DNA of 64,000 nucleotides from Obrimoposthia wandeli (taxonomy: Eukaryota). The stretch is taken from assembly GCA_977020255.1 (NCBI GenBank), contig CDROCS010001674.1, forward strand, positions 1-64,000, given 5' to 3'. Below, one piece after another: positions 3,461 to 43,308 of the stretch (the first letter of the stretch is position 1; each line of letters opens with the position of its first letter). Under the pieces are notes generated by a model, which searched no databases, had not been told where the DNA came from, and was given only the letters and a program-made list of their open reading frames with translations. Position numbers and translations under genes: made by a program.

Positions 3461-4600
3461 TTAATTAGATGCGTTTAATTTACCATTATTTGTTGATGCA
3501 TTACTTTTTGATACATTGCTCTGTGGTGCACTGTCTTGTGATGAATTGCCTTGCGATGCGATATGGGCGCGAATAAAGGCGAGTGTTTTTTCACACTCGT
3601 CACGATTACCGACACTAATACGAATGCAGTTTTCGATAGGAGAGCGTCGTAAAATAATGCCGTGATTCCATAATGCTGTGAATAAGGCATCCGCTTGTGG
3701 GAATTTCACCAGTAAATAATTACCATAGCCATCGTAAACAGTAATACCTGGCAGCATCCCTAAGCCTGCTTGTAAGTAAGCGCGATTTGCACTGATGTCG
3801 AGAACTTGATATTTCGTTTTAGCACGACCTGCGACAGACAACGCTTGAACGGCTATATCAGCGACAGGTACTGGTACAGGGTATGGTGCAATGACCTTTA
3901 ACAATAAGTTAATAACATCAGTGTTGGCTAGCGTAAAACCACAACGTAAACCTGCTAATGCAAATGCTTTTGATAGCGTGCGAAGAATCACTAAGTGTGG
4001 ATACTTGGCGAGTAGATCTACCGTTGATGTTTCAAGGCAAAAGTCGATGTATGCTTCATCAACAACCACAAGTGCTTTGTCTGTGGTCATATCAAGTAGC
4101 TTTTCGATATCTCGGCGCTTCATGACGTTACCGGTAGGATTGTTAGGGCTACATACGAACACTAACTTAACCCCATCGAGGTTACTTTGAATTGAAGGCA
4201 GGTCTAATTGCCATTGTGGTGTTAATGGTACTGTTTTCGTTTTGATATCAAACGTTTCTGCGCTGATAGCATACATGCCATAAGTTGGTGGACAGTACAG
4301 AATACTGTCTTGGTTTGGTTCACAAAATGTGCGGATTAATAATTCGATACCTTCGTCGGCACCGCGCGATGTTAATACTTGCTTGCTATCAACCCCAGCA
4401 TAATCAGCATAAGCCTGAATCAGGTCGGCTGGTTGGCATTCACTATAGCGGTTTAGGCGACTACAAGTGACGCTATACTCATTAGCAAAAGGGGATTCGT
4501 TTGCGTTTAACCAAATATCACCACTGCCACCTAAACGACGTGCCGATTGATAAGGCGTAAGTTCGCGTACTGTTTTACGCGCCAGTTGTTCAATGCTCAT
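3461..4600 (-). CDS. hisC: Histidinol-phosphate aminotransferase HisC with Ser/Asn-rich C-terminal tail
   Basis: [20 protein letters not shown] and [15 protein letters not shown] (PLP lysine). Confidence 0.97.
3491..3550. repeat. Four degenerate 15-bp tandem units encoding the HisC tail
   Basis: Forward units tgttgatgcattact / ttttgatacattgct / ctgtggtgcactgtc / ttgtgatgaattgcc. Confidence 0.55.
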
Positions 4601-4602
4601 AA

Positions 4603-5934
4603 TTACGCCTCTTTCTCTTCAATTTGTTGTGCTTTCAATATTGCTTGCTGTTGTAACTTCTCGATGCGGATAGTAACGGCACGTTTATGCGCATCGAGCC
4701 CTTCCGCTTCTGCCATGGTAACCACTGTAGGTGCTAAGGTTTTTAGGCCATCTGCGGTGAGTTCTTGTACTGTCATGCGCTTAGAAAAATCAGCAAGACC
4801 TAAGCTTGAATAGGTACGGGTGTAACCATAGGTTGGTAATACGTGGTTAGTGCCAGAAGCGTAGTCACCCACCGATTCAGGTGACCAATCACCGAGAAAA
4901 ATTGAGCCAGCATTATCCAATAAAGGCACTAACTCTCGTGGTTCACGCGTCTGTACAATTAAGTGTTCAGGACCGTAGTGGTTAGAAATCGAGATACACT
5001 GTGTAATTGTTTCCGTAACGATTAAAATACTTGAACCCAAGGCTTGGCGCGCAATATCGGCACGAGGTAATACTTTCAGTTGCAGTTGAATCGCATCTGC
5101 TACACGATCAGCAATGCTTGGTTCTGGTGTTAGTAAAATAACTTGAGAATCAGGTCCGTGTTCTGCTTGGCTTAATAAATCAGCGGCGATGAAATCAGGA
5201 TCTGCCGTTTTATCCGCAATGACTAATACTTCTGAAGGGCCTGCTGGCATATCAATAGCCGCACCACGAAAATCATTACTGACTTGGCGTTTAGCTTCTG
5301 TAACAAATGCATTACCGGGTCCGAAAATCTTATCGACTCTTACGACTGATTTTGTACCATAAGCCATAGCTGCAATAGCTTGAGAGCCGCCAATATTATA
5401 GATTTCTGTAATGCCACATAGCTGGGCCACATATAAAATTTCATCGGCAATCGGTGGCGGTGAGCATAAAACGACTTGACGGCATCCTGCGATTTGCGCG
5501 GGAACACCAAGCATTAATACTGTCGATGGTAATGGTGCACTGCCACCGGGAATGTATAAACCAACAGAATTTATTGGGCGTGTTACTTGTTCACATACCA
5601 CGCCAGGTTGTGTTTCAACACGTAGCGGCTTTATTTTCTGCGCTTTGTGGAATGTTGAGATATTTTGATAAGCCTGTTGCAGCGCCTGTTTCATGTTATC
5701 ACTAAGTCGTGATGAAGCAGCCGTTACTTCCTGTTCAGAGACTCTGATTGAATCAGGACGAACACGATCAAACTTTTCAGTGAGATCTAACAGTGCTTCA
5801 TCACCACGTTGACGGACATCAGCAACCACTTCAGCGACAATGGCGGTAATATTTGCACCTTCAGTTATTGCTGGACGCTGAAGTAAAGACTCTTGCTGGT
5901 TTTCACTGAGAGATTGCCAAACAACCGTTTTCAT
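4603..5934 (-). CDS. hisD: Histidinol dehydrogenase HisD
   Basis: [22 protein letters not shown] and [13 protein letters not shown] motifs. Confidence 0.98.
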
Positions 5935-6835: not shown

Positions 6836-6890
6836 GGTCATATTCCTTAATCCAATTCTGTAAAGTTGTACTTTTAAAGCCCTAAAACGC

Positions 6891-6924
6891 AAAAACCCTC
6901 GGAAGTATTGCTCTCCGAGGGTTT
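6891..6924 (-). terminator. his operon attenuator terminator
   Basis: AAACCCTCGGA/TCCGAGGGTTT stem with a U-run on the minus strand, between the leader peptide and hisG. Confidence 0.9.
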
Positions 6925-6997
6925 GAATTCTTTATTTTATCAAACACTGGAAGAGTTTTTGGTTGTCTTCCAGAGTGAGGCGTATCCTCCCGAAAGA

Positions 6998-7045
6998 CTA
7001 GTCAGGATGATGATGGTGATGTAGGTTTACCATTGAGATACGCAT
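6998..7045 (-). CDS. hisL: his operon leader peptide MRISMVNLHHHHHPD
   Basis: 15-codon ORF with five consecutive His codons followed by PD*, upstream of the attenuator hairpins. Confidence 0.95.
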   Translation of the reverse strand: MRISMVNLHHHHHPD

Positions 7046-35211: not shown

Positions 35212-35675
35212 CTACGTTGATGGACACTAGAAAAGTAGCATCGATGTATAAATGATTTTTAATGTGAGTTTTTATCGGTATGAAGAATGCTGGATAAATA
35301 CTTGTTATCAGTGCGATTGAAAAAAAAGTATTAAGTTTTAATTGATTATTAGAATAAATATTCTACTTTATTATGTTGTAAATATAGCTGTGAATTGATT
35401 TAAAACAAAAAGAGGACAAGCTGTGGATGGATCAGATTTTTTCTAAAGGAATTAAAGAGAACATCAATGTTTATCTTCAGCAGGAAGCTGAGTAAAAGGC
35501 GAGTATGAGAAACTCTGTGGGCGAGAATAATACGCCGATAAGAAATATCGGTCAATCCCTTGCGATTATTATTTAGGTTTTTCTTCCCTCTTATCCAAAT
35601 AACATCATTAGCATTGACTTTATAATATCTCTCCGCAGAATGGAGGATTGTTGTCTTTGTGTTGGACGCGTCATC

Positions 35676-37700
35676 ATGAGTAAAGTCTTCTCTCTATCTT
35701 CTGGTTTTTCACCAGCAGGTGATCAACCTACAGCAATTAATCAATTATTAGAGGGGCTTGATTCAGGGCTTGCTCATCAGACTTTACTGGGCGTTACAGG
35801 TTCAGGCAAAACGTTCACTATTGCGAATGTAATAGCAAAATCCAATCGTCCTACGTTTATCATGGCGCCGAATAAGACGTTAGCCGCGCAACTCTATGGC
35901 GAGATGAAAGAGTTCTTTCCTGAGAATGCAGTCGAATATTTTGTGTCTTATTATGATTATTACCAGCCTGAAGCATATGTGCCAACAACCGATACTTTTA
36001 TTGAAAAAGATGCCTCTGTAAACGCACATATTGAACAGATGCGACTATCCGCCACCAAAGCATTATTAGAGCGTCGCGACGTTATTATTATTGCTTCTGT
36101 ATCTGCAATCTATGGTTTGGGCGATCCTGATTCCTACTTGAAGATGATGTTGCATGTACGCCGTGGAGACGTGCTAAATCAGCGTGATATTCTCCGTCGC
36201 CTTGCTGAATTACAATATACGCGCAATGACGTTGCTTTTGAGCGTGGGCATTTTCGTGTAAGAGGGGAAGTCATCGACGTTTTTCCTGCTGAATCAGAAC
36301 ATGATGCTATCCGTATTGAACTGTTTGACGATGAAGTTGAGTGTATCAGCGTATTTGATCCTTTAACTGGTGCGATACTGCAAAAAGATTTGCCGCGTTG
36401 TACGATTTATCCGAAGACGCACTATGTAACCCCTCGAGAAAAAATTCTTGAAGCCATTGAAAAAATTAAAGTTGAGTTGGTTGTTCGACGTAAGCAGCTT
36501 CTAGATAGCAATAAGCTTGTAGAAGAGCAACGAATTTCACAGCGTACGCAATTTGATATTGAAATGATGAATGAATTAGGTTTTTGTTCAGGTATCGAAA
36601 ACTATTCTCGTTACTTAAGTGGTCGTGAGGAAGGAGAGCCGCCCCCTACGTTATTTGACTATTTGCCGGCAGATGGATTGCTCATCATCGATGAATCACA
36701 TGTTACAGTCTCGCAAATTGGTGCTATGTATCGTGGTGATCGCTCTCGTAAAGAAAACTTGGTTGAATACGGGTTTCGTTTACCCTCTGCTCTCGACAAC
36801 CGTCCAATGAAATTTGATGAGTTTGCATCATTAGCCCCGCAAACTATTTATGTTTCAGCAACACCGGGTAAATATGAAATAGAGCAATCGGGTAATGATA
36901 TTGCCGAACAGGTTGTTAGACCTACAGGCTTACTCGATCCTATTATTGAAGTGCGTCCGGTTGCAACACAAGTGGATGATCTATTATCTGAAATTCGGAT
37001 CAGAGAAGCGAAAGGTGAGCGCGTGTTGGTAACGACACTGACTAAGCGTATGTCTGAAGATTTAGCCGAATATCTTGCAGAACATAATGTCAAAGTACGC
37101 TACCTTCACTCCGACATCGATACTGTCGAGCGTGTAGAGATTATTCGTGATTTGCGTTTAGGTGTGTTTGATGTGTTGGTGGGTATCAACTTGCTTCGAG
37201 AAGGCCTAGATATTCCAGAAGTGTCTTTAGTGGCTATTCTTGATGCAGACAAAGAAGGGTTTTTACGTTCAGAGCGTTCGTTGATTCAAACAATTGGTCG
37301 TGCGGCACGTAACCTTGAAGGTCGTGCTATTCTCTATGGCGACAAGATCACAGGCTCAATGGAACGGGCAATCTTTGAGACCAATCGCCGGCGTGAGAAG
37401 CAAGCTCTCCATAACGAAAAAAATGGTATTACTCCGAAGGGATTGAATAAAAAGGTGGGTGATATTCTTGAACTCGGCAAGCCAAGTTCTCGTTCCAGAA
37501 CGAATAAAGCAGCGCAGCTCAATCGTGTAGCTGAAAGTAAAGGCACTTATATCAATCTGTCTCCTCAGCAGTTGGAAACTGAAATACAGCGGCTAGAAAC
37601 AGAGATGTATGATTTGGCGCAGAACTTAGAATTTGAAAAAGCAGCTGAAGCCCGTGACAAAATACATACGTTACGCCAGCAGTTTATAATGAACAGTTAA
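35676..37700 (+). CDS. uvrB: Excinuclease ABC subunit B
   Basis: [23 protein letters not shown] and QTIGRAARN. The ATG at 35676 gives MSKVF. Confidence 0.99.
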
Positions 37701-37787
37701 CGATAAGATAACCCCTTTTCGTCGCGAGTAACAAGTCGGTGTTACGTATTATTCGCGACAAATTCCTTTCTTTACCAAATTACAGGC

Positions 37788-37888
37788 AAAAAAAAGCCAA
37801 CCGTAATAGTTTCGGTTGGCACCATTGTTTTAGTGAATTTATTCCACAAACAACGTCAGTTGGCTAGGTTGACTCTACATTAGAGTCA
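37788..37888 (-). ncRNA. qrr1: Quorum regulatory RNA Qrr1
   Basis: Contains CCTAGCCAACTGACGTTGTT (Qrr core), a 5' hairpin and a GCCAACCG/CGGTTGGC terminator with U-run. It is divergent from luxO and preceded by a sigma54 promoter. Confidence 0.95.
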
Positions 37889-37898
37889 ATTGTATTAA

Positions 37899-37915
37899 TG
37901 CATCTCTCGTGCCAA
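37899..37915 (-). promoter_or_regulatory. sigma54 promoter of qrr1
   Basis: TTGGCACGAGAGATGCA (GG-N10-GC); predicted +1 at 37888. Confidence 0.9.
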
Positions 37916-37997: not shown

Positions 37998-38012
37998 TTC
38001 GCATTTTGCGAA
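37998..38012. promoter_or_regulatory. Putative LuxO binding site between qrr1 and luxO
   Basis: Palindrome TTCGCA-TTT-TGCGAA, a variant of TTGCA-W3-TGCAA, centred about 117 bp upstream of the qrr1 +1. Confidence 0.65.
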
Positions 38013-38128: not shown

Positions 38129-39580
38129 ATGGAAAGCGGAATAAAACAAAGACACGTTTTAATGGTGGAAGATACAGCCTCGGTAGCTGCATTGTATAAA
38201 TCTTATCTAAACCCATTGGGACTAAATGTCACGATTGTCGGAACAGGACGAGATGCGCTGAACTTCATGAAAGAGACGGTGCCTGAACTTATCCTGCTGG
38301 ATCTGCGTTTACCTGATATGACAGGGATGGAAGTCCTTGAATTTGTCCGTCGTGACTATAAAAATTTACCTGTCGTTATTATGACAGCCCACGGTTCTAT
38401 CGATGTGGCGGTAGATGCCATGAGGCATGGCGCACAAGACTTTCTGATCAAACCCTGCGAAGCTGATCGTTTACGCATTACAGTGAACAATGCATTAAAA
38501 GATAAAAGTAAAAGTCAGCAATCATCTACATCTAAGCAAGGTGGAGCACAATATCAGGGGTTCATCGGTAATAGTATACCGATGCAAGCCGTATATCGTG
38601 TTATCGAATCTGCAGCGTCGAGTAAAGCAACGGTTTTTGTAACGGGTGAAAGTGGTACGGGTAAAGAAGTGTGTGCAGAAGCGATTCACGCAGCCAGCCC
38701 GCGTAATGATAAACCGTTTGTAGCATTAAATTGTGCAGCTATTCCTAAAGAGCTCATTGAAAGTGAGTTATTTGGTCATGTTAAAGGTGCATTTACAGGT
38801 GCATCGACTGAACGGCAAGGTGCTGTAGAAATGGCTCATAAAGGAACATTGTTTCTTGATGAGCTTTGTGAAATGGATTTGGATTTACAAAGTAAGTTAT
38901 TACGCTTTATTCAAACAGGAACATATCAAAAAGTCGGTTCATCTAAAACGAGCACTGTTGATGTACGTTTTGTATGTGCGACGAATCGTAATCCGTGGAT
39001 TGAGGTTCAAGAAGGACGGTTCCGAGAGGATCTCTATTATCGCTTACACGTTATTCCAATTGCATTACCACCGTTACGTGATCGTAGTGACGATATGATT
39101 GAAATAGCCCATGCTTTATTAGCGTTGATGTCTGTGGAAGAAGGTAAAAACTTTAGTCGTTTTTCTTCCGACGTTATTGAATTGTTTAAGTTACATGCTT
39201 GGCCGGGCAATGTTCGTGAATTACAAAACGTTATACGTAATATTGTCGTTTTAAATTCTGGAGAAGAAGTCACACTTCAAATGGTTCCACCGCCGATTAG
39301 TGAGATATCTGGCGCTGAAATTGCATCCCCTCTAAGAATTGCTTCTGGAGTACAAATAAGTACGATTGCACAGAACGACATTTCACATACAGAACCCATT
39401 GAACGGACTGCAATTGAGCCACTTTGGGTGGTAGAAAAACGTGCAATACAAGCTGCTATTGATGCGTGTGATGGTAATATTCCTCGTGCGGCAGGTTTTC
39501 TCGAAGTTAGCCCATCAACAATTTATAGAAAATTACAAGCCTGGCAAGATGCTGTCGGTAGTAATAGGGAGATCGATTAA
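38129..39580 (+). CDS. luxO: Quorum-sensing sigma54 response regulator LuxO
   Basis: [12 protein letters not shown], receiver [22 protein letters not shown] and C-terminal HTH. Confidence 0.98.
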
Positions 39581-39582
39581 TT

Positions 39583-39942
39583 ATGACTATCAATATTAAC
39601 CATGAAACAATAAAGCGTCTAGCTGATGAAGTAGGTGAAGAAACCGTTTCGATCTTGTTCAATGTATTTAGTGATGAACTAGAGCAATATTTACGTCAAT
39701 TATCAGATCAACCAACGGTAACCCAAATTGGTGACATCAGTCATGCTGTAAAGAGCAGTGCTGCTAGCTTTGGTGCAGATGATCTCGCTCTAATGGCTCA
39801 AGAATGTGAATCGAGAGTGAAGCAAGAGCAAGATCATTGGATTGTCGATCGTCTGCCTGAATTTAGAACGATGGTTGAAGAGACAGCTCATAAATATAAG
39901 CAGTTAGCCAGCAATAATGATCTTATCAATAGCATGCTTTAA
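39583..39942 (+). CDS. luxU: Hpt phosphorelay protein LuxU
   Basis: SHAVKSSAASFGA Hpt motif immediately after luxO. Confidence 0.95.
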   Translation: MTININHETIKRLADEVGEETVSILFNVFSDELEQYLRQLSDQPTVTQIGDISHAVKSSAASFGADDLALMAQECESRVKQEQDHWIVDRLPEFRTMVEETAHKYKQLASNNDLINSML

Positions 39943-40797
39943 CTTTTCTCTATCATGACGCCATTCTTGATTACTAGATGCTAAGTCTTCGATAAGTTGC
40001 TCGTACCGAGGTGCGAGCTCAGGTATCGGCTTATCAGTAATTACTGCATCAATATACTTACCGCCCATCGCTCGCTCACACCAATGTAACATGGTCATGA
40101 GTGACATTTTCCCAGCAGGTCCATTCTCTTGGTCTAAATTCGTAATGAAAACAATTCTGGCATTAGAATCTTTTAATGCGCCAGCAATTTCTTTCAATAA
40201 TAGTGGTGGCATAATGCTGGTTAGAAAGCTGCCGGGGCCCAGTAAAACAATATCTGCTTCATGAATAGCCGTTACCGTTTCTTTGGTTGCAGGTACTAAT
40301 GGCTCAACATACAGACGTTGTGGAACGTCTTGCAGTTCATCGATACTGGTTTCACCACAAATGATTTCACCCGTTAAGGTCAAAGCAGATAAATCGGCAG
40401 GATGCTCTGACATGGGGATAATTTGTGTTTTAACTTTGAGCATATCGCGAATAAGGTTTATTGCTTCTAGCGGGCGCACTGATAGGTTATCGAGTGCGGT
40501 AAGCATTAAATTACCTAAGTTGTGACCATTTAATTCACCGTTACCCCGAAACCTGTATTCGAAGATCATTGAACCGACAGAAGGCTCTGTAATTAATTGA
40601 TTGATGCAATTTCGCATATCTCCCCATGCAATTCCGCCTTGGCAAGCACGAATTCGACCGGTTGATCCACCATTGTCTGTGGTTGTTACGATCCCCGTAA
40701 CTTGAGATCCGTAATCAGACAAGGCAGAAAGTATACGACCTAAACCATGACCACCGCCAATAGCGACGATTTTTGTTTTATTTTGATTATCCGTCAT
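39904..40797 (-). CDS. yvcK: YvcK/YbhK-family gluconeogenesis factor
   Basis: AIGGGHGL, TTTDNGGSTGR and GPGSFLTSI; convergent with luxU. Confidence 0.95.
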   Translation of the reverse strand: MTDNQNKTKIVAIGGGHGLGRILSALSDYGSQVTGIVTTTDNGGSTGRIRACQGGIAWGDMRNCINQLITEPSVGSMIFEYRFRGNGELNGHNLGNLMLTALDNLSVRPLEAINLIRDMLKVKTQIIPMSEHPADLSALTLTGEIICGETSIDELQDVPQRLYVEPLVPATKETVTAIHEADIVLLGPGSFLTSIMPPLLLKEIAGALKDSNARIVFITNLDQENGPAGKMSLMTMLHWCERAMGGKYIDAVITDKPIPELAPRYEQLIEDLASSNQEWRHDREKLKHAIDKIIIAG

Positions 40798-40999
40798 GTG
40801 CAATGTGCAAGCTTTTGTAATCTGTATTTATCCGTGAGTGTATACAAGGCTGCAATATGAATACAAGATCTGGATGTTAATATGCTGCTTGCATCACGCT
40901 TAGTAAGCATTATTGTGTGAAGCTTAAGCGGGTATAAAACGCCTTCAATCATAAAGTAAAAATACACAGCATATTGGGTCGTTATTATCTGTAAGCAAG

Positions 41000-41575
41000 C
41001 TAATGTGATTCTAGCATCATACTCATGAGGTAATCACAGGTATCGAGGCAGTTTGGTGTGTTGAGAAGTAGCTGCTTTTCACTAGCAGGTACAGGTAAAA
41101 TCTCTAGCCAACGTTGGCATAACCAACTCAGGTTATGAAATTCTTTCTTTATGTGTAAATTATCTAATTCAGGGTATTTATCAAACATAATTTGTAATTT
41201 ATCAGCCAACAATTGTTGGTTGTTACGTGCCTTCATTTCAGACCATTGCGGTAGTACCTGATATTCACCAAAGAAAACACCATTATCGTTTTGTTCTAAC
41301 GATTTGATACGGAAGCTTTCGTGTCCATAAACCGTAACGATTAATGCGCCATCTTTTTTAGAGGTATCAAAATCTTCAACCGTTACACGCGTACCGATAT
41401 GAAAAAATTGGTGATTATGCTCACTCCGGTCAAACATACAAACGCCAAATCCTTCTTCAGATGTGACTGCGACTTTAAACGCGTCAGTTTGCGGCCCTGG
41501 AGCGATCCTTATTGGCATTCTACCCGTCGGCAAAACATGACGTTTTTGAAAAAGTAGCGGTAGTAAATTCGTCAT
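41000..41575 (-). CDS. Stand-alone Lon N-terminal (substrate-binding) domain protein
   Basis: LPLLFQKRHVLPTGRMPIRI...FGVCM...RFRI-like...WLCQRWLEILP pattern with no AAA+ or protease domain. A GGAG RBS lies 6 nt before the ATG at 41575. Confidence 0.85.
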   Translation of the reverse strand: MTNLLPLLFQKRHVLPTGRMPIRIAPGPQTDAFKVAVTSEEGFGVCMFDRSEHNHQFFHIGTRVTVEDFDTSKKDGALIVTVYGHESFRIKSLEQNDNGVFFGEYQVLPQWSEMKARNNQQLLADKLQIMFDKYPELDNLHIKKEFHNLSWLCQRWLEILPVPASEKQLLLNTPNCLDTCDYLMSMMLESH

Positions 41576-41618
41576 TGTCGGCTCCATTTCTAAATGTTGA
41601 TGTCTGATAAGGTAGACA

Positions 41619-41636
41619 TTGCAAATGTGATGCCGA
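41619..41636 (-). promoter_or_regulatory. Putative sigma54 promoter of the Lon-N gene
   Basis: Minus strand TCGGCATCACATTTGCAA = GG-N10-GC with CA and TTGCA conserved; predicted +1 at about 41609. Confidence 0.7.
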
Positions 41637-41699
41637 CATTTCGATACCGCTATTTTGTTGTTTTATACCTTCGTTGGTATGAGTGGTAGGGTGCATTTT

Positions 41700-41743
41700 T
41701 TGCATATTGCAAATAGTTCGCTCATCCAAACTGCAAAATGCAA
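41700..41743. promoter_or_regulatory. Two tandem LuxO-consensus enhancer boxes
   Basis: TTGCA-TAT-TGCAA (41700-41712, perfect) and CTGCA-AAA-TGCAA (41731-41743, one mismatch). Confidence 0.65.
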
Positions 41744-41749
41744 AGCACT

Positions 41750-41977
41750 TTATTTCTGATTAGCAATAATACGAAGTGCATTGTCACTGGGTAGCAGTTC
41801 TAAATGCCCTTGGTCGTTAAAATACCAGCCTTTGATAATCCCTTTACTTGCCATGTCACTGAAGCCATCAATAACACTTTGTGCCTGTTGATAAGATGCT
41901 TTTACATCTATGCCGTCTTCTCGCTGCAGATAGAGCGCTATATCGTCAATGGTTGCAGATTCAATAATATTGGACAT
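41750..41977 (-). CDS. 75-aa hypothetical protein
   Basis: MSNIIESATIDDIALYLQRE...KGWYF...LELLPS; purine-rich RBS (CTGGGGG) before the ATG at 41977. Confidence 0.75.
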   Translation of the reverse strand: MSNIIESATIDDIALYLQREDGIDVKASYQQAQSVIDGFSDMASKGIIKGWYFNDQGHLELLPSDNALRIIANQK

Positions 41978-42168
41978 AAAACCCCCAGAATTAGTGAGAA
42001 ATATAAAGAATATTCCCTTTAGTAGTATTGTCGCGATCCGCGCCAAAAGGTAGAATATGGCAATATTTTTTCAGTAACTTGTCAATAAGGCATTTTATCT
42101 GATACTTTTATAATTAGATTAGCTGTTATGTTACTTGCTTCCTAATGAGTCAAGTTGCATAGCTGCCA

Positions 42169-42300
42169 TAACTCCGAGCTTTGGTCACTACGTTTTCTGT
42201 TTTTCTTAAATTCAGAATATATGTGTTCAGAGCCAGTGACATACTGTCACCAGGGTCAATTTAGAAATGAATCGGCCTCCCGTATTTGGAAAGGTGTTCC
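42169..42300 (+). ncRNA. Moco RNA motif (molybdenum cofactor riboswitch)
   Basis: ACTCCGAGC...CACCAGGG...GAAA...GCCTCCCGTATTTGGAAAGGTG directly before the moaA ATG, matching the moaA leader motif. Confidence 0.9.
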
Positions 42301-43308
42301 ATGGCGCAACAATTAGATAATGATCTTCAATTTGAAGATCGCTTTAATCGTAAGTTTTATTACTTGCGACTGTCAGTTACAGATGTCTGTAATTTTAAAT
42401 GTACTTACTGCCTACCTGATGGCTATAAGCCGACAGAAAAAAAGAAACCTTCTTTTCTTACATTGGATGAGATTGAGCGCGTAACGAGGGCTTTTGCTGA
42501 ATGTGGAACGTCAAAAGTACGTATCACGGGTGGCGAACCTAGTTTACGTCGTGACTATACAGATATTATCCGTACTGTTGCGGCTCAGCCCGGTATCACG
42601 AAAGTGGCAACTACCACAAATGGCTACCGCATGGCAAAGAATGTCAAAGAGTGGCGAGAGGCTGGTCTTACTCATATCAATGTGAGTGTAGATAGTTTAG
42701 ATCCTAAGATGTTTTATCAAATCACCGGCGAGAATATGTTTCATAAGGTGATGTCAGGGATCGATGCGGCATTTGACGCAGGTTTTGAACAAGTCAAAAT
42801 CAATACGGTATTGCTGAAAAATCAGAATTCACAAGAGCTACCAAGGTTTCTAGCATGGATTAAAACGCGTCCTATTCAGTTGCGTTTTATTGAACTGATG
42901 CAGACTGGTGAAATGGATTCGTTATTCAAAAATCATCATGTTTCTGGTGTAAGTATTCGTAATCATCTTATTGCTAATGGTTGGCTTTTAAAGATCAATG
43001 GCAAAAATGATGGCCCAGCACAAGTCTTTTGTCATCCCGATTATATGGGTGAAATTGGGCTTATCATGCCTTATGAAAAAAACTTCTGTCAAAGTTGCAA
43101 CCGTTTACGCGTTTCAGCAAAAGGCAAACTTCACCTGTGCCTATTTGGTGATCATGGGATAGAGCTTCGTGATTTACTGTCGACAGATGAGCAACGAAAA
43201 GAACTCATTAGTCGTATTCAAGGTGGATTAAAGGAAAAAGCGGTTAGCCATTTCCTTGATGCTGGAAATACAGGTATGACACCTAATCTTGCTTCTATTG
43301 GCGGTTGA
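42301..43308 (+). CDS. moaA: GTP 3',8-cyclase MoaA
   Basis: CNFKCTYC radical-SAM motif and C-terminal CQSCNRLR...C, ending in IGG. Confidence 0.98.

Follow-up and report, generated by a model that had tools for sequence, protein, structure and literature searches.

Does the quorum-sensing regulator LuxO drive a protein-coding gene directly, or only the Qrr small RNAs (sRNAs) through which it is treated as acting almost exclusively in Vibrio model species? The question is posed by a 64-kb stretch of DNA (positions 1 to 64,000 of contig CDROCS010001674.1, assembly GCA_977020255.1, deposited as Obrimoposthia wandeli; the window below means this whole stretch), in which luxO lies close to a gene for a 191-amino-acid protein with a Lon N domain only. 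We use the name lonN for this gene. By its sequence, the window is Photobacterium DNA of the profundum/indicum/frigidiphilum group, and LonN is 95-96% identical to the proteins of that group. A first-pass annotation of the window had proposed that lonN is read from a sigma-54 promoter with two LuxO-type sites and that this lineage thereby wires the gene into the low-cell-density quorum state. Our analysis suggests that lonN is probably a direct protein-coding output of LuxO. The motifs behind the proposal turned out to be conserved, helically phased and lost together with qrr1. The choice of LuxO as the activator is an interpretation that has to contend with clades lacking the boxes and with Aeromonas. 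The supposed restriction to one lineage did not hold, as the arrangement recurs in at least five genera.

The features of lonN and its upstream region are the following.

41000-41575, minus strand: lonN, 191 amino acids, PF02190 only
41580-41585, minus strand: ribosome-binding site GGAGCC, with GGAG 7 nucleotides (nt) before ATG 41575
41601-41618, no strand assigned: inverted repeat TGTCTA-N6-CAGACA directly after the -12 element, spanning the predicted start
41609, minus strand: predicted transcription start, ~12 nt past the GC of the -12 element, from sigma-54 geometry
41635-41620, minus strand: predicted sigma-54 -24/-12 element CGGCATCACATTTGCA (CGGCAT-CACAT-TTGCA, GG-N10-GC)
41643-41651, minus strand: conserved block AGCGGTAT(C/G), 8-16 nt upstream of the -24 GG, in Photobacterium only
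41700-41712, no strand assigned: proximal LuxO-type box TTGCATATTGCAA, 0 mismatches to TTGCAWWWTGCAA, a perfect palindrome centred at ~-97
41731-41743, no strand assigned: distal LuxO-type box CTGCAAAATGCAA, 1 mismatch to TTGCAWWWTGCAA, centred at ~-128

The GG-N10-GC element that had been described upstream of the gene is indeed present, 44 nt from the start codon. The start codon common to orthologues is ATG 41575 and not the upstream ATG 41587, and the lonN leader in Photobacterium is only ~34 nt long. Within the window, sigma-54-like matches with at most two mismatches are as frequent as expected (35 observed versus 38 expected), hence the element alone is not significant. A LonN alignment scan of species-representative genomes gave 80 further loci covering Photobacterium, Thaumasiovibrio, Enterovibrio, Grimontia and Salinivibrio (81 with the window). 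Comparison of these orthologues, as had been advised, recovered NGGCAY-N5-TTGCW with an invariant GG-N10-GC in 76 of the 81 lonN upstream regions, at 33-155 nt before the ATG. An element score of at least 17 is reached by 94% (76/81) of these regions, versus 5.9% of all 230-nt windows and 2.1% of shuffled sequences. Among 52 non-redundant upstream sequences (<85% identity), information content peaks only at GGCA and TTGC and is near zero elsewhere, which is how a sigma-54 promoter shows in such an alignment. The 174-bp intergenic region between lonN and the small open reading frame (ORF) preceding it yielded no sigma-70-like promoter on the minus strand. The sigma-54 promoter of lonN is very probably real.

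Other conserved elements surround this promoter. The half-sites of the inverted repeat are kept in most Photobacterium species, with the form TCTAG-N4-CTAGA in Salinivibrio, and the repeat looks like a candidate operator for a second regulator. GlrR/QseF-type sites have the form TGTC-N10-GACA, and the repeat was considered as an activator site of that type. The candidate was rejected because the repeat overlies the predicted start and has no further copies upstream. No known site was recognized in the block at 41643-41651. In Enterovibrio and Grimontia (loci L044, L052, L055 and L059-L064; L numbers denote sampled loci), lonN leaders are 106-155 nt long and contain a conserved GGTATCTAAGYAGTTCCGAT stretch ~100-155 nt before the ATG; this stretch may be a target site or act in cis as a regulatory RNA.

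The two LuxO-type boxes were likewise found as first reported, with centres 31 bp apart and the distal box beginning 7 nt after the stop codon of the small ORF. They are the only matches with at most one mismatch to TTGCAWWWTGCAA in the window, where 1.43 would be expected. The claim that they fit the LuxO consensus better than the box at qrr1 itself also stands, given that the best qrr1 box TCGCAAAATGCGA (37999-38011) has 2 mismatches. A rough estimate puts at ~4e-5 per window the chance of two boxes within 31 bp, located 60-140 nt upstream of a sigma-54-like match on the right strand. The single-window case rests on this combination of boxes and sigma-54 match.

Conservation of the boxes extends the case across genera. 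Over the 200 bp preceding the lonN element, boxes with at most one mismatch to TTGCANNNTGCAA reach 5.39/kb, compared with 4.38/kb in the same interval upstream of qrr1 and 0.03/kb in the remaining 891 kb. LuxO-type boxes are enriched ~150-fold upstream of lonN. At least one such box is present in all loci of Enterovibrio (12/12), Grimontia (5/5), Thaumasiovibrio (3/3) and the P. angustum clade (5/5), as well as in 3/4 Salinivibrio and 30/36 other Photobacterium loci. Across loci, box positions range from -72 to -145 relative to the lonN promoter, and the centres form a ladder of ~10.5 bp (-74, -85, -96, -107, -118, -128 and -139). A box at -93 to -99 is retained in many Photobacterium species, and Parasalinivibrio has three boxes at 21-22 bp spacing. 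With a 10.5-bp period, the mean phase is 8.6 for lonN boxes (R 0.50, n 58) and 8.7 for qrr1 boxes (R 0.80, n 44). Relative to the promoter, the boxes of lonN and of qrr1 thus occupy one and the same side of the helix. The p-values for phase are inflated by shared ancestry, and the informative part is the agreement between the two phases. A possible lineage covariation of the half-site variants TCGCA and TTGCA between lonN and qrr1 boxes was also tried. Both variants occur at both promoters with no clear pattern, and the idea was abandoned.

The neighbourhood of lonN in the window is as follows.

35640-37700, plus strand: uvrB
37787-37889, minus strand: qrr1 sRNA gene (Rfam RF00378, 79 bits), with a sigma-54 element at 37899-37914 and its best LuxO box at 37999-38011
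38129-39580, plus strand: luxO, with receiver domain, sigma-54 AAA+ domain with GAFTGA, and Fis-type helix-turn-helix (HTH)
39583-39942, plus strand: luxU, Hpt phosphorelay protein
39904-40803, minus strand: ybhK/yvcK (CofD family), downstream of lonN
41750-41977, minus strand: 75-amino-acid small ORF upstream of lonN on the same strand, no family assigned
42160-42313, plus strand: molybdenum cofactor (Moco) riboswitch ahead of moaA, 94.6 bits, ordinary

Away from this group, the window holds an ordinary histidine operon leader at 6887-7022 (83.8 bits). The lonN stop codon lies 1.4 kb from the end of luxO, and the lonN promoter lies ~2 kb from luxO. Every one of the 80 loci that is long enough has the order moaA-(small ORF)-lonN-ybhK-luxU-luxO-qrr1-uvrB. 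Core Vibrio and Aliivibrio are not represented among the lonN homologues listed, where the name Vibrio is borne only by V. stylophorae and Vibrio sp. Of7-15. This apparent absence would explain why the arrangement was not noticed earlier. The 75-amino-acid ORF is conserved in Photobacterium only (plus Vibrio sp. Of7-15), and a family search with it returned no Pfam match and an NCBIfam match only at noise level. Downstream, ybhK has its own 13-nt 5' untranslated region in P. profundum SS9.

Natural losses link the lonN promoter to qrr1. The five loci without the lonN element also have no detectable qrr1. They comprise Enterovibrio metagenome-assembled genomes (MAGs) from metagenomic runs and Candidatus E. 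escicola (L066, L069 and L070) as well as two Vibrionaceae MAGs (L073 and L074). Beyond these five, qrr1 went undetected only in four loci truncated where their contigs stop. L066 and L069 have an intact luxO and a deletion of qrr1 that leaves a luxO-uvrB gap of only ~175-187 bp, and the spacing in their lonN element has shifted to GG-N11/12-GC. Of the LuxO boxes upstream of luxO, these two loci keep no more than remnants (L066 8261-8434 and L069 9304-9491). V. stylophorae has luxO, no room for qrr1 and a weak lonN element. In Veronia pacifica (L086 6896-8337), luxO is frameshifted before the HTH, so that residues 1-399 and 429-481 do not share a frame; the assembly retains qrr1, and its lonN element has the spacing GG-N11-GC. 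The more distant lonN homologues of Idiomarina and Celerinatantimonas, which have no luxU or luxO nearby, showed no sigma-54 element either.

We suggest the following mechanism. If RpoN uses the element, lonN would be transcribed from an RpoN promoter at 41635-41620. Phosphorylated, low-cell-density LuxO (LuxO~P) would activate this promoter from the sites at ~-97 and -128, provided that LuxO and not a paralogue binds there, with the same geometry as at qrr1. The gene would then be expressed at low cell density and silent at high density, and lonN would be a direct protein-coding member of the LuxO regulon. We consider it likely that LuxO~P is the activator of the lonN promoter in this lineage. 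The joint claim of a genuine sigma-54 promoter, activated by LuxO~P, that makes lonN a low-cell-density gene appears moderately likely.

Several observations weigh against this proposal. The sampled loci are phylogenetically related, so the counts above overstate the number of independent observations. In the literature searched, no report of LuxO binding, of rpoN or luxO mutants or of a start site was found for lonN-carrying species, and no paper was found linking LuxO or RpoN to a Lon N-domain gene. Chromatin immunoprecipitation sequencing (ChIP-seq) of V. cholerae LuxO gave only qrr1-4 and one weak peak at cspD/clpS (PMC10328515), hence a protein-coding LuxO target has little precedent. The remaining observations bear on the identity of the activator and on read-through, and are taken up with the alternatives they favour.

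The alternative that survives best accepts the sigma-54 promoter and assigns its activation to another enhancer-binding protein (bEBP), either a SypG-like LuxO paralogue with overlapping site recognition or the bEBP serving the promoter in Aeromonas, with LuxO having no part or a partial one. In A. veronii and A. schubertii, where no luxO lies nearby, a strong TGGCAC/T-N5-CTGCA element precedes the lonN ATG by 37-40 nt (Aeromonas loci L081 at 4900-5000, L085 at 3900-4000, and L084). A narXL-like pair borders lonN on one side there, and on the other are genes for a FIST protein and a hybrid histidine kinase together with ybhK and a luxU-like Hpt gene. Sigma-54 dependence thus need not be tied to LuxO, and sigma-54 control of lonN would be older and wider than recognizable LuxO boxes. 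The Aeromonas arrangement may be the older form of the lonN module. Apparent boxes ~240-280 nt upstream in Aeromonas fall inside the HTH coding region of the narL-like gene and were set aside as a coding coincidence. Within Photobacterium, no box (≤2 mismatches, 220 bp) occurs in any of nine P. phosphoreum-clade loci, in P. damselae or in P. jeanii, all of which retain the sigma-54 element, luxO and qrr1. The P. phosphoreum clade (L048-L058, L072) keeps CGGCAYCAGACTTGCT and shows only isolated TTGCA/TGCAA half-sites in place of boxes, which suggests a clade-specific rewiring of the activator input. Furthermore, SypG activates V. fischeri qrr1 via LuxO sites (PMC10162802), and the LuxO motif therefore does not identify the bound protein uniquely. 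Set against a different activator are the lonN boxes themselves, which fit the LuxO consensus at least as well as the qrr1 boxes and resemble them in density and helical phase. Moreover, the window has no bEBP gene other than luxO, all Vibrionaceae loci examined show luxO and lonN in synteny, and the lonN element decays where qrr1 is lost. Activation by another bEBP is unlikely, though of all alternatives it deserves the most attention.

A second alternative holds that lonN is expressed mainly by read-through from a sigma-70 promoter of the small ORF, with the sigma-54 element playing a minor role. The minus strand showed no terminator separating the small ORF from lonN, and read-through may thus contribute. 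RNA sequencing of P. profundum SS9 (PMC3505737, supplementary file 8) gives 6-36 reads for lonN (PBPRA1122), 12-51 for the small ORF and 0-5.6 for Qrr. The flanking genes are ~10-fold higher, at 256-316 reads for luxO and 163-263 for ybhK. Coverage of lonN is too low for a transcription start call, and the figures serve as relative read counts only. Counts of the small ORF and lonN co-vary over the four SS9 samples, in keeping with possible read-through. The low counts of lonN and Qrr are weakly consistent with a promoter that is off in dense culture and on only at low density. In public metatranscriptomes, pieces of the lonN body occur in contigs of three studies and none spans 41564-41672, with the contigs showing neither start nor strand. 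Contigs covering the small ORF end near 41673-41683, which argues weakly against read-through as these are contigs only. Another objection comes from Enterovibrio, Grimontia, Salinivibrio and Thaumasiovibrio, in which the small ORF is missing and the element and boxes are retained. We give read-through as the main source of lonN transcripts little weight.

LuxO might also bind the boxes without activating lonN, in which case they would be a LuxO sink or decoy, or would have a repressive or architectural part in the lux locus. In Vibrio harveyi, LuxO binds its own promoter for autorepression, which lends the idea some support. The V. cholerae cspD/clpS peak, for which no output was demonstrated (PMC10328515), points the same way. 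However, a conserved sigma-54 element invariably follows the lonN boxes at 70-145 nt, with the boxes on a fixed helical face, and this geometry is that of activation. If the boxes were decoys only, the -24/-12 element, which is the region's most conserved feature, would be superfluous. Binding without activation earns about as little weight as read-through. Finally, chance co-occurrence of motifs without function, which the lack of enrichment of sigma-54-like matches in the window would allow, can practically be dismissed because of the cross-genus conservation, the box enrichment, the helical phasing and the joint loss with qrr1.

Two RNA-based explanations of the region were tried and rejected. 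A hidden qrr or other sRNA behind the lonN promoter found no support, as the sole Qrr match in the window is the one at 37787-37889 and an RNA family scan of 41450-41800 gave no match at E≤1. Pairing of Qrr1 with the lonN leader in a feed-forward loop was dropped since duplex energies versus shuffles were inconsistent over 11 species (z = +0.9 in the window).

What would the LuxO regulon gain with LonN? The first-pass annotation had called the gene a protease-less Lon N-domain gene near luxO, and the protein analysis agrees. PF02190 matches residues 7-187 of 191 with E = 1.4e-12 and 48 bits (cut-off 28.7). The Pfam scan found no other domain, and the ORF ends after 191 amino acids without an AAA+ ATPase or an S16 Ser-Lys protease domain. 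LonN is a stand-alone Lon N-domain protein of the COG2802 type, and it cannot itself be a protease because both modules are missing. An AlphaFold model (46-sequence alignment) has a predicted local distance difference test score (pLDDT) of 91 and a predicted template modelling score (pTM) of 0.86. The best structural matches of the model are 1ZBO (BPP1347, template modelling (TM) score 0.78-0.82) and 7CAY, followed by LonA N domains (3LJC) and the cereblon Lon-like domain. A C-terminal motif, WLCQRWLE-LP-P--EKQ-L, is almost invariant in the Vibrionaceae/Aeromonas LonN subfamily and could be a partner-binding surface. In the literature searched, no function was found for COG2802 stand-alone Lon N-domain proteins, nor any regulatory link of these to quorum sensing. 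That LonN modulates Lon-dependent proteolysis, as an adaptor or a competitor, is a tentative and speculative idea, and equally hypothetical is the adaptor, decoy or anti-adaptor in a proteolysis arm parallel to Qrr1 that the first-pass annotation had put forward.

If the LuxO wiring is true, the low-cell-density state of at least five genera would include a protein made directly under LuxO control. The widespread stand-alone Lon N-domain proteins (COG2802), for which structures have been solved, would also be placed in a regulatory context for the first time. ClpAP, and Lon under heat stress, degrade SmcR/HapR-type regulators and thereby shape quorum-state transitions (PMC12977469). A quorum-controlled Lon-domain protein is thus a candidate link to the proteolysis of LuxR/HapR-type regulators. 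On comparison of the loci, the lonN wiring is ancestral to the non-Vibrio genera of Vibrionaceae. A bolder scenario, which we regard as quite improbable, would make lonN an ancestral direct output of a LuxU/LuxO-type system, at least as old as Qrr. LonN would then be a low-density Lon adaptor or anti-adaptor altering the stability of LuxR/HapR/LitR-type regulators, a post-translational arm parallel to Qrr that was lost in model Vibrio. The ancestral-output part of this scenario draws on Aeromonas, where a sigma-54 lonN already stands beside an Hpt protein and a hybrid kinase.

Among known systems, the qrr1-5 promoters (activator site TTGCAW3TGCAA) come closest to the lonN promoter. Both combine a GG-N10-GC element with one to three TTGCA-N3-TGCAA boxes that occupy the same face of the helix ~70-145 nt upstream, both lie close to luxO, and the lonN promoter is present or lost together with qrr1. 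The qrr promoters drive sRNAs, whereas the lonN promoter precedes an mRNA for a 191-amino-acid protein in a region without an Rfam match. The window's lonN boxes fit the consensus more closely than its qrr1 box does, and some clades keep the lonN promoter without boxes. The V. cholerae cspD-clpS peak (PMC10328515) resembles lonN in being a LuxO-motif site outside qrr near a protease accessory gene, ClpS being the ClpAP adaptor. Unlike lonN, the peak is weak, far from luxO and without a sigma-54 promoter shown, whereas the lonN boxes accompany a conserved sigma-54 element. V. fischeri qrr1 (PMC10162802) shares with lonN two LuxO-type sites placed between -60 and -175 at a sigma-54 promoter, but the target of the dual activation by LuxO and SypG is qrr1. 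On the protein side, the Lon N-terminal domain protein of Xanthomonas campestris (7CAY) and BPP1347 of Bordetella (1ZBO) are similar to LonN in length (190-210 amino acids) and fold (TM 0.73-0.82). Profile searches connect them to LonN with E-values of 9e-23 and 5.5e-17, and a degenerate C-terminal W-x3-RW-x-E-x-LPL motif is held in common. They differ in sharing only ~17-24% identity with LonN, and the full WLCQRWLE-LP-P--EKQ-L motif belongs to the Vibrionaceae/Aeromonas subfamily. The LonA N domain (E. coli 3LJC and 2ANE, M. taiwanensis 7CR9) and the cereblon Lon-like domain share with LonN the PUA-like beta-barrel and the helical subdomain. In LonA, the N domain recognizes substrates, and LonN has this domain without the AAA+ and S16 protease module of LonA.

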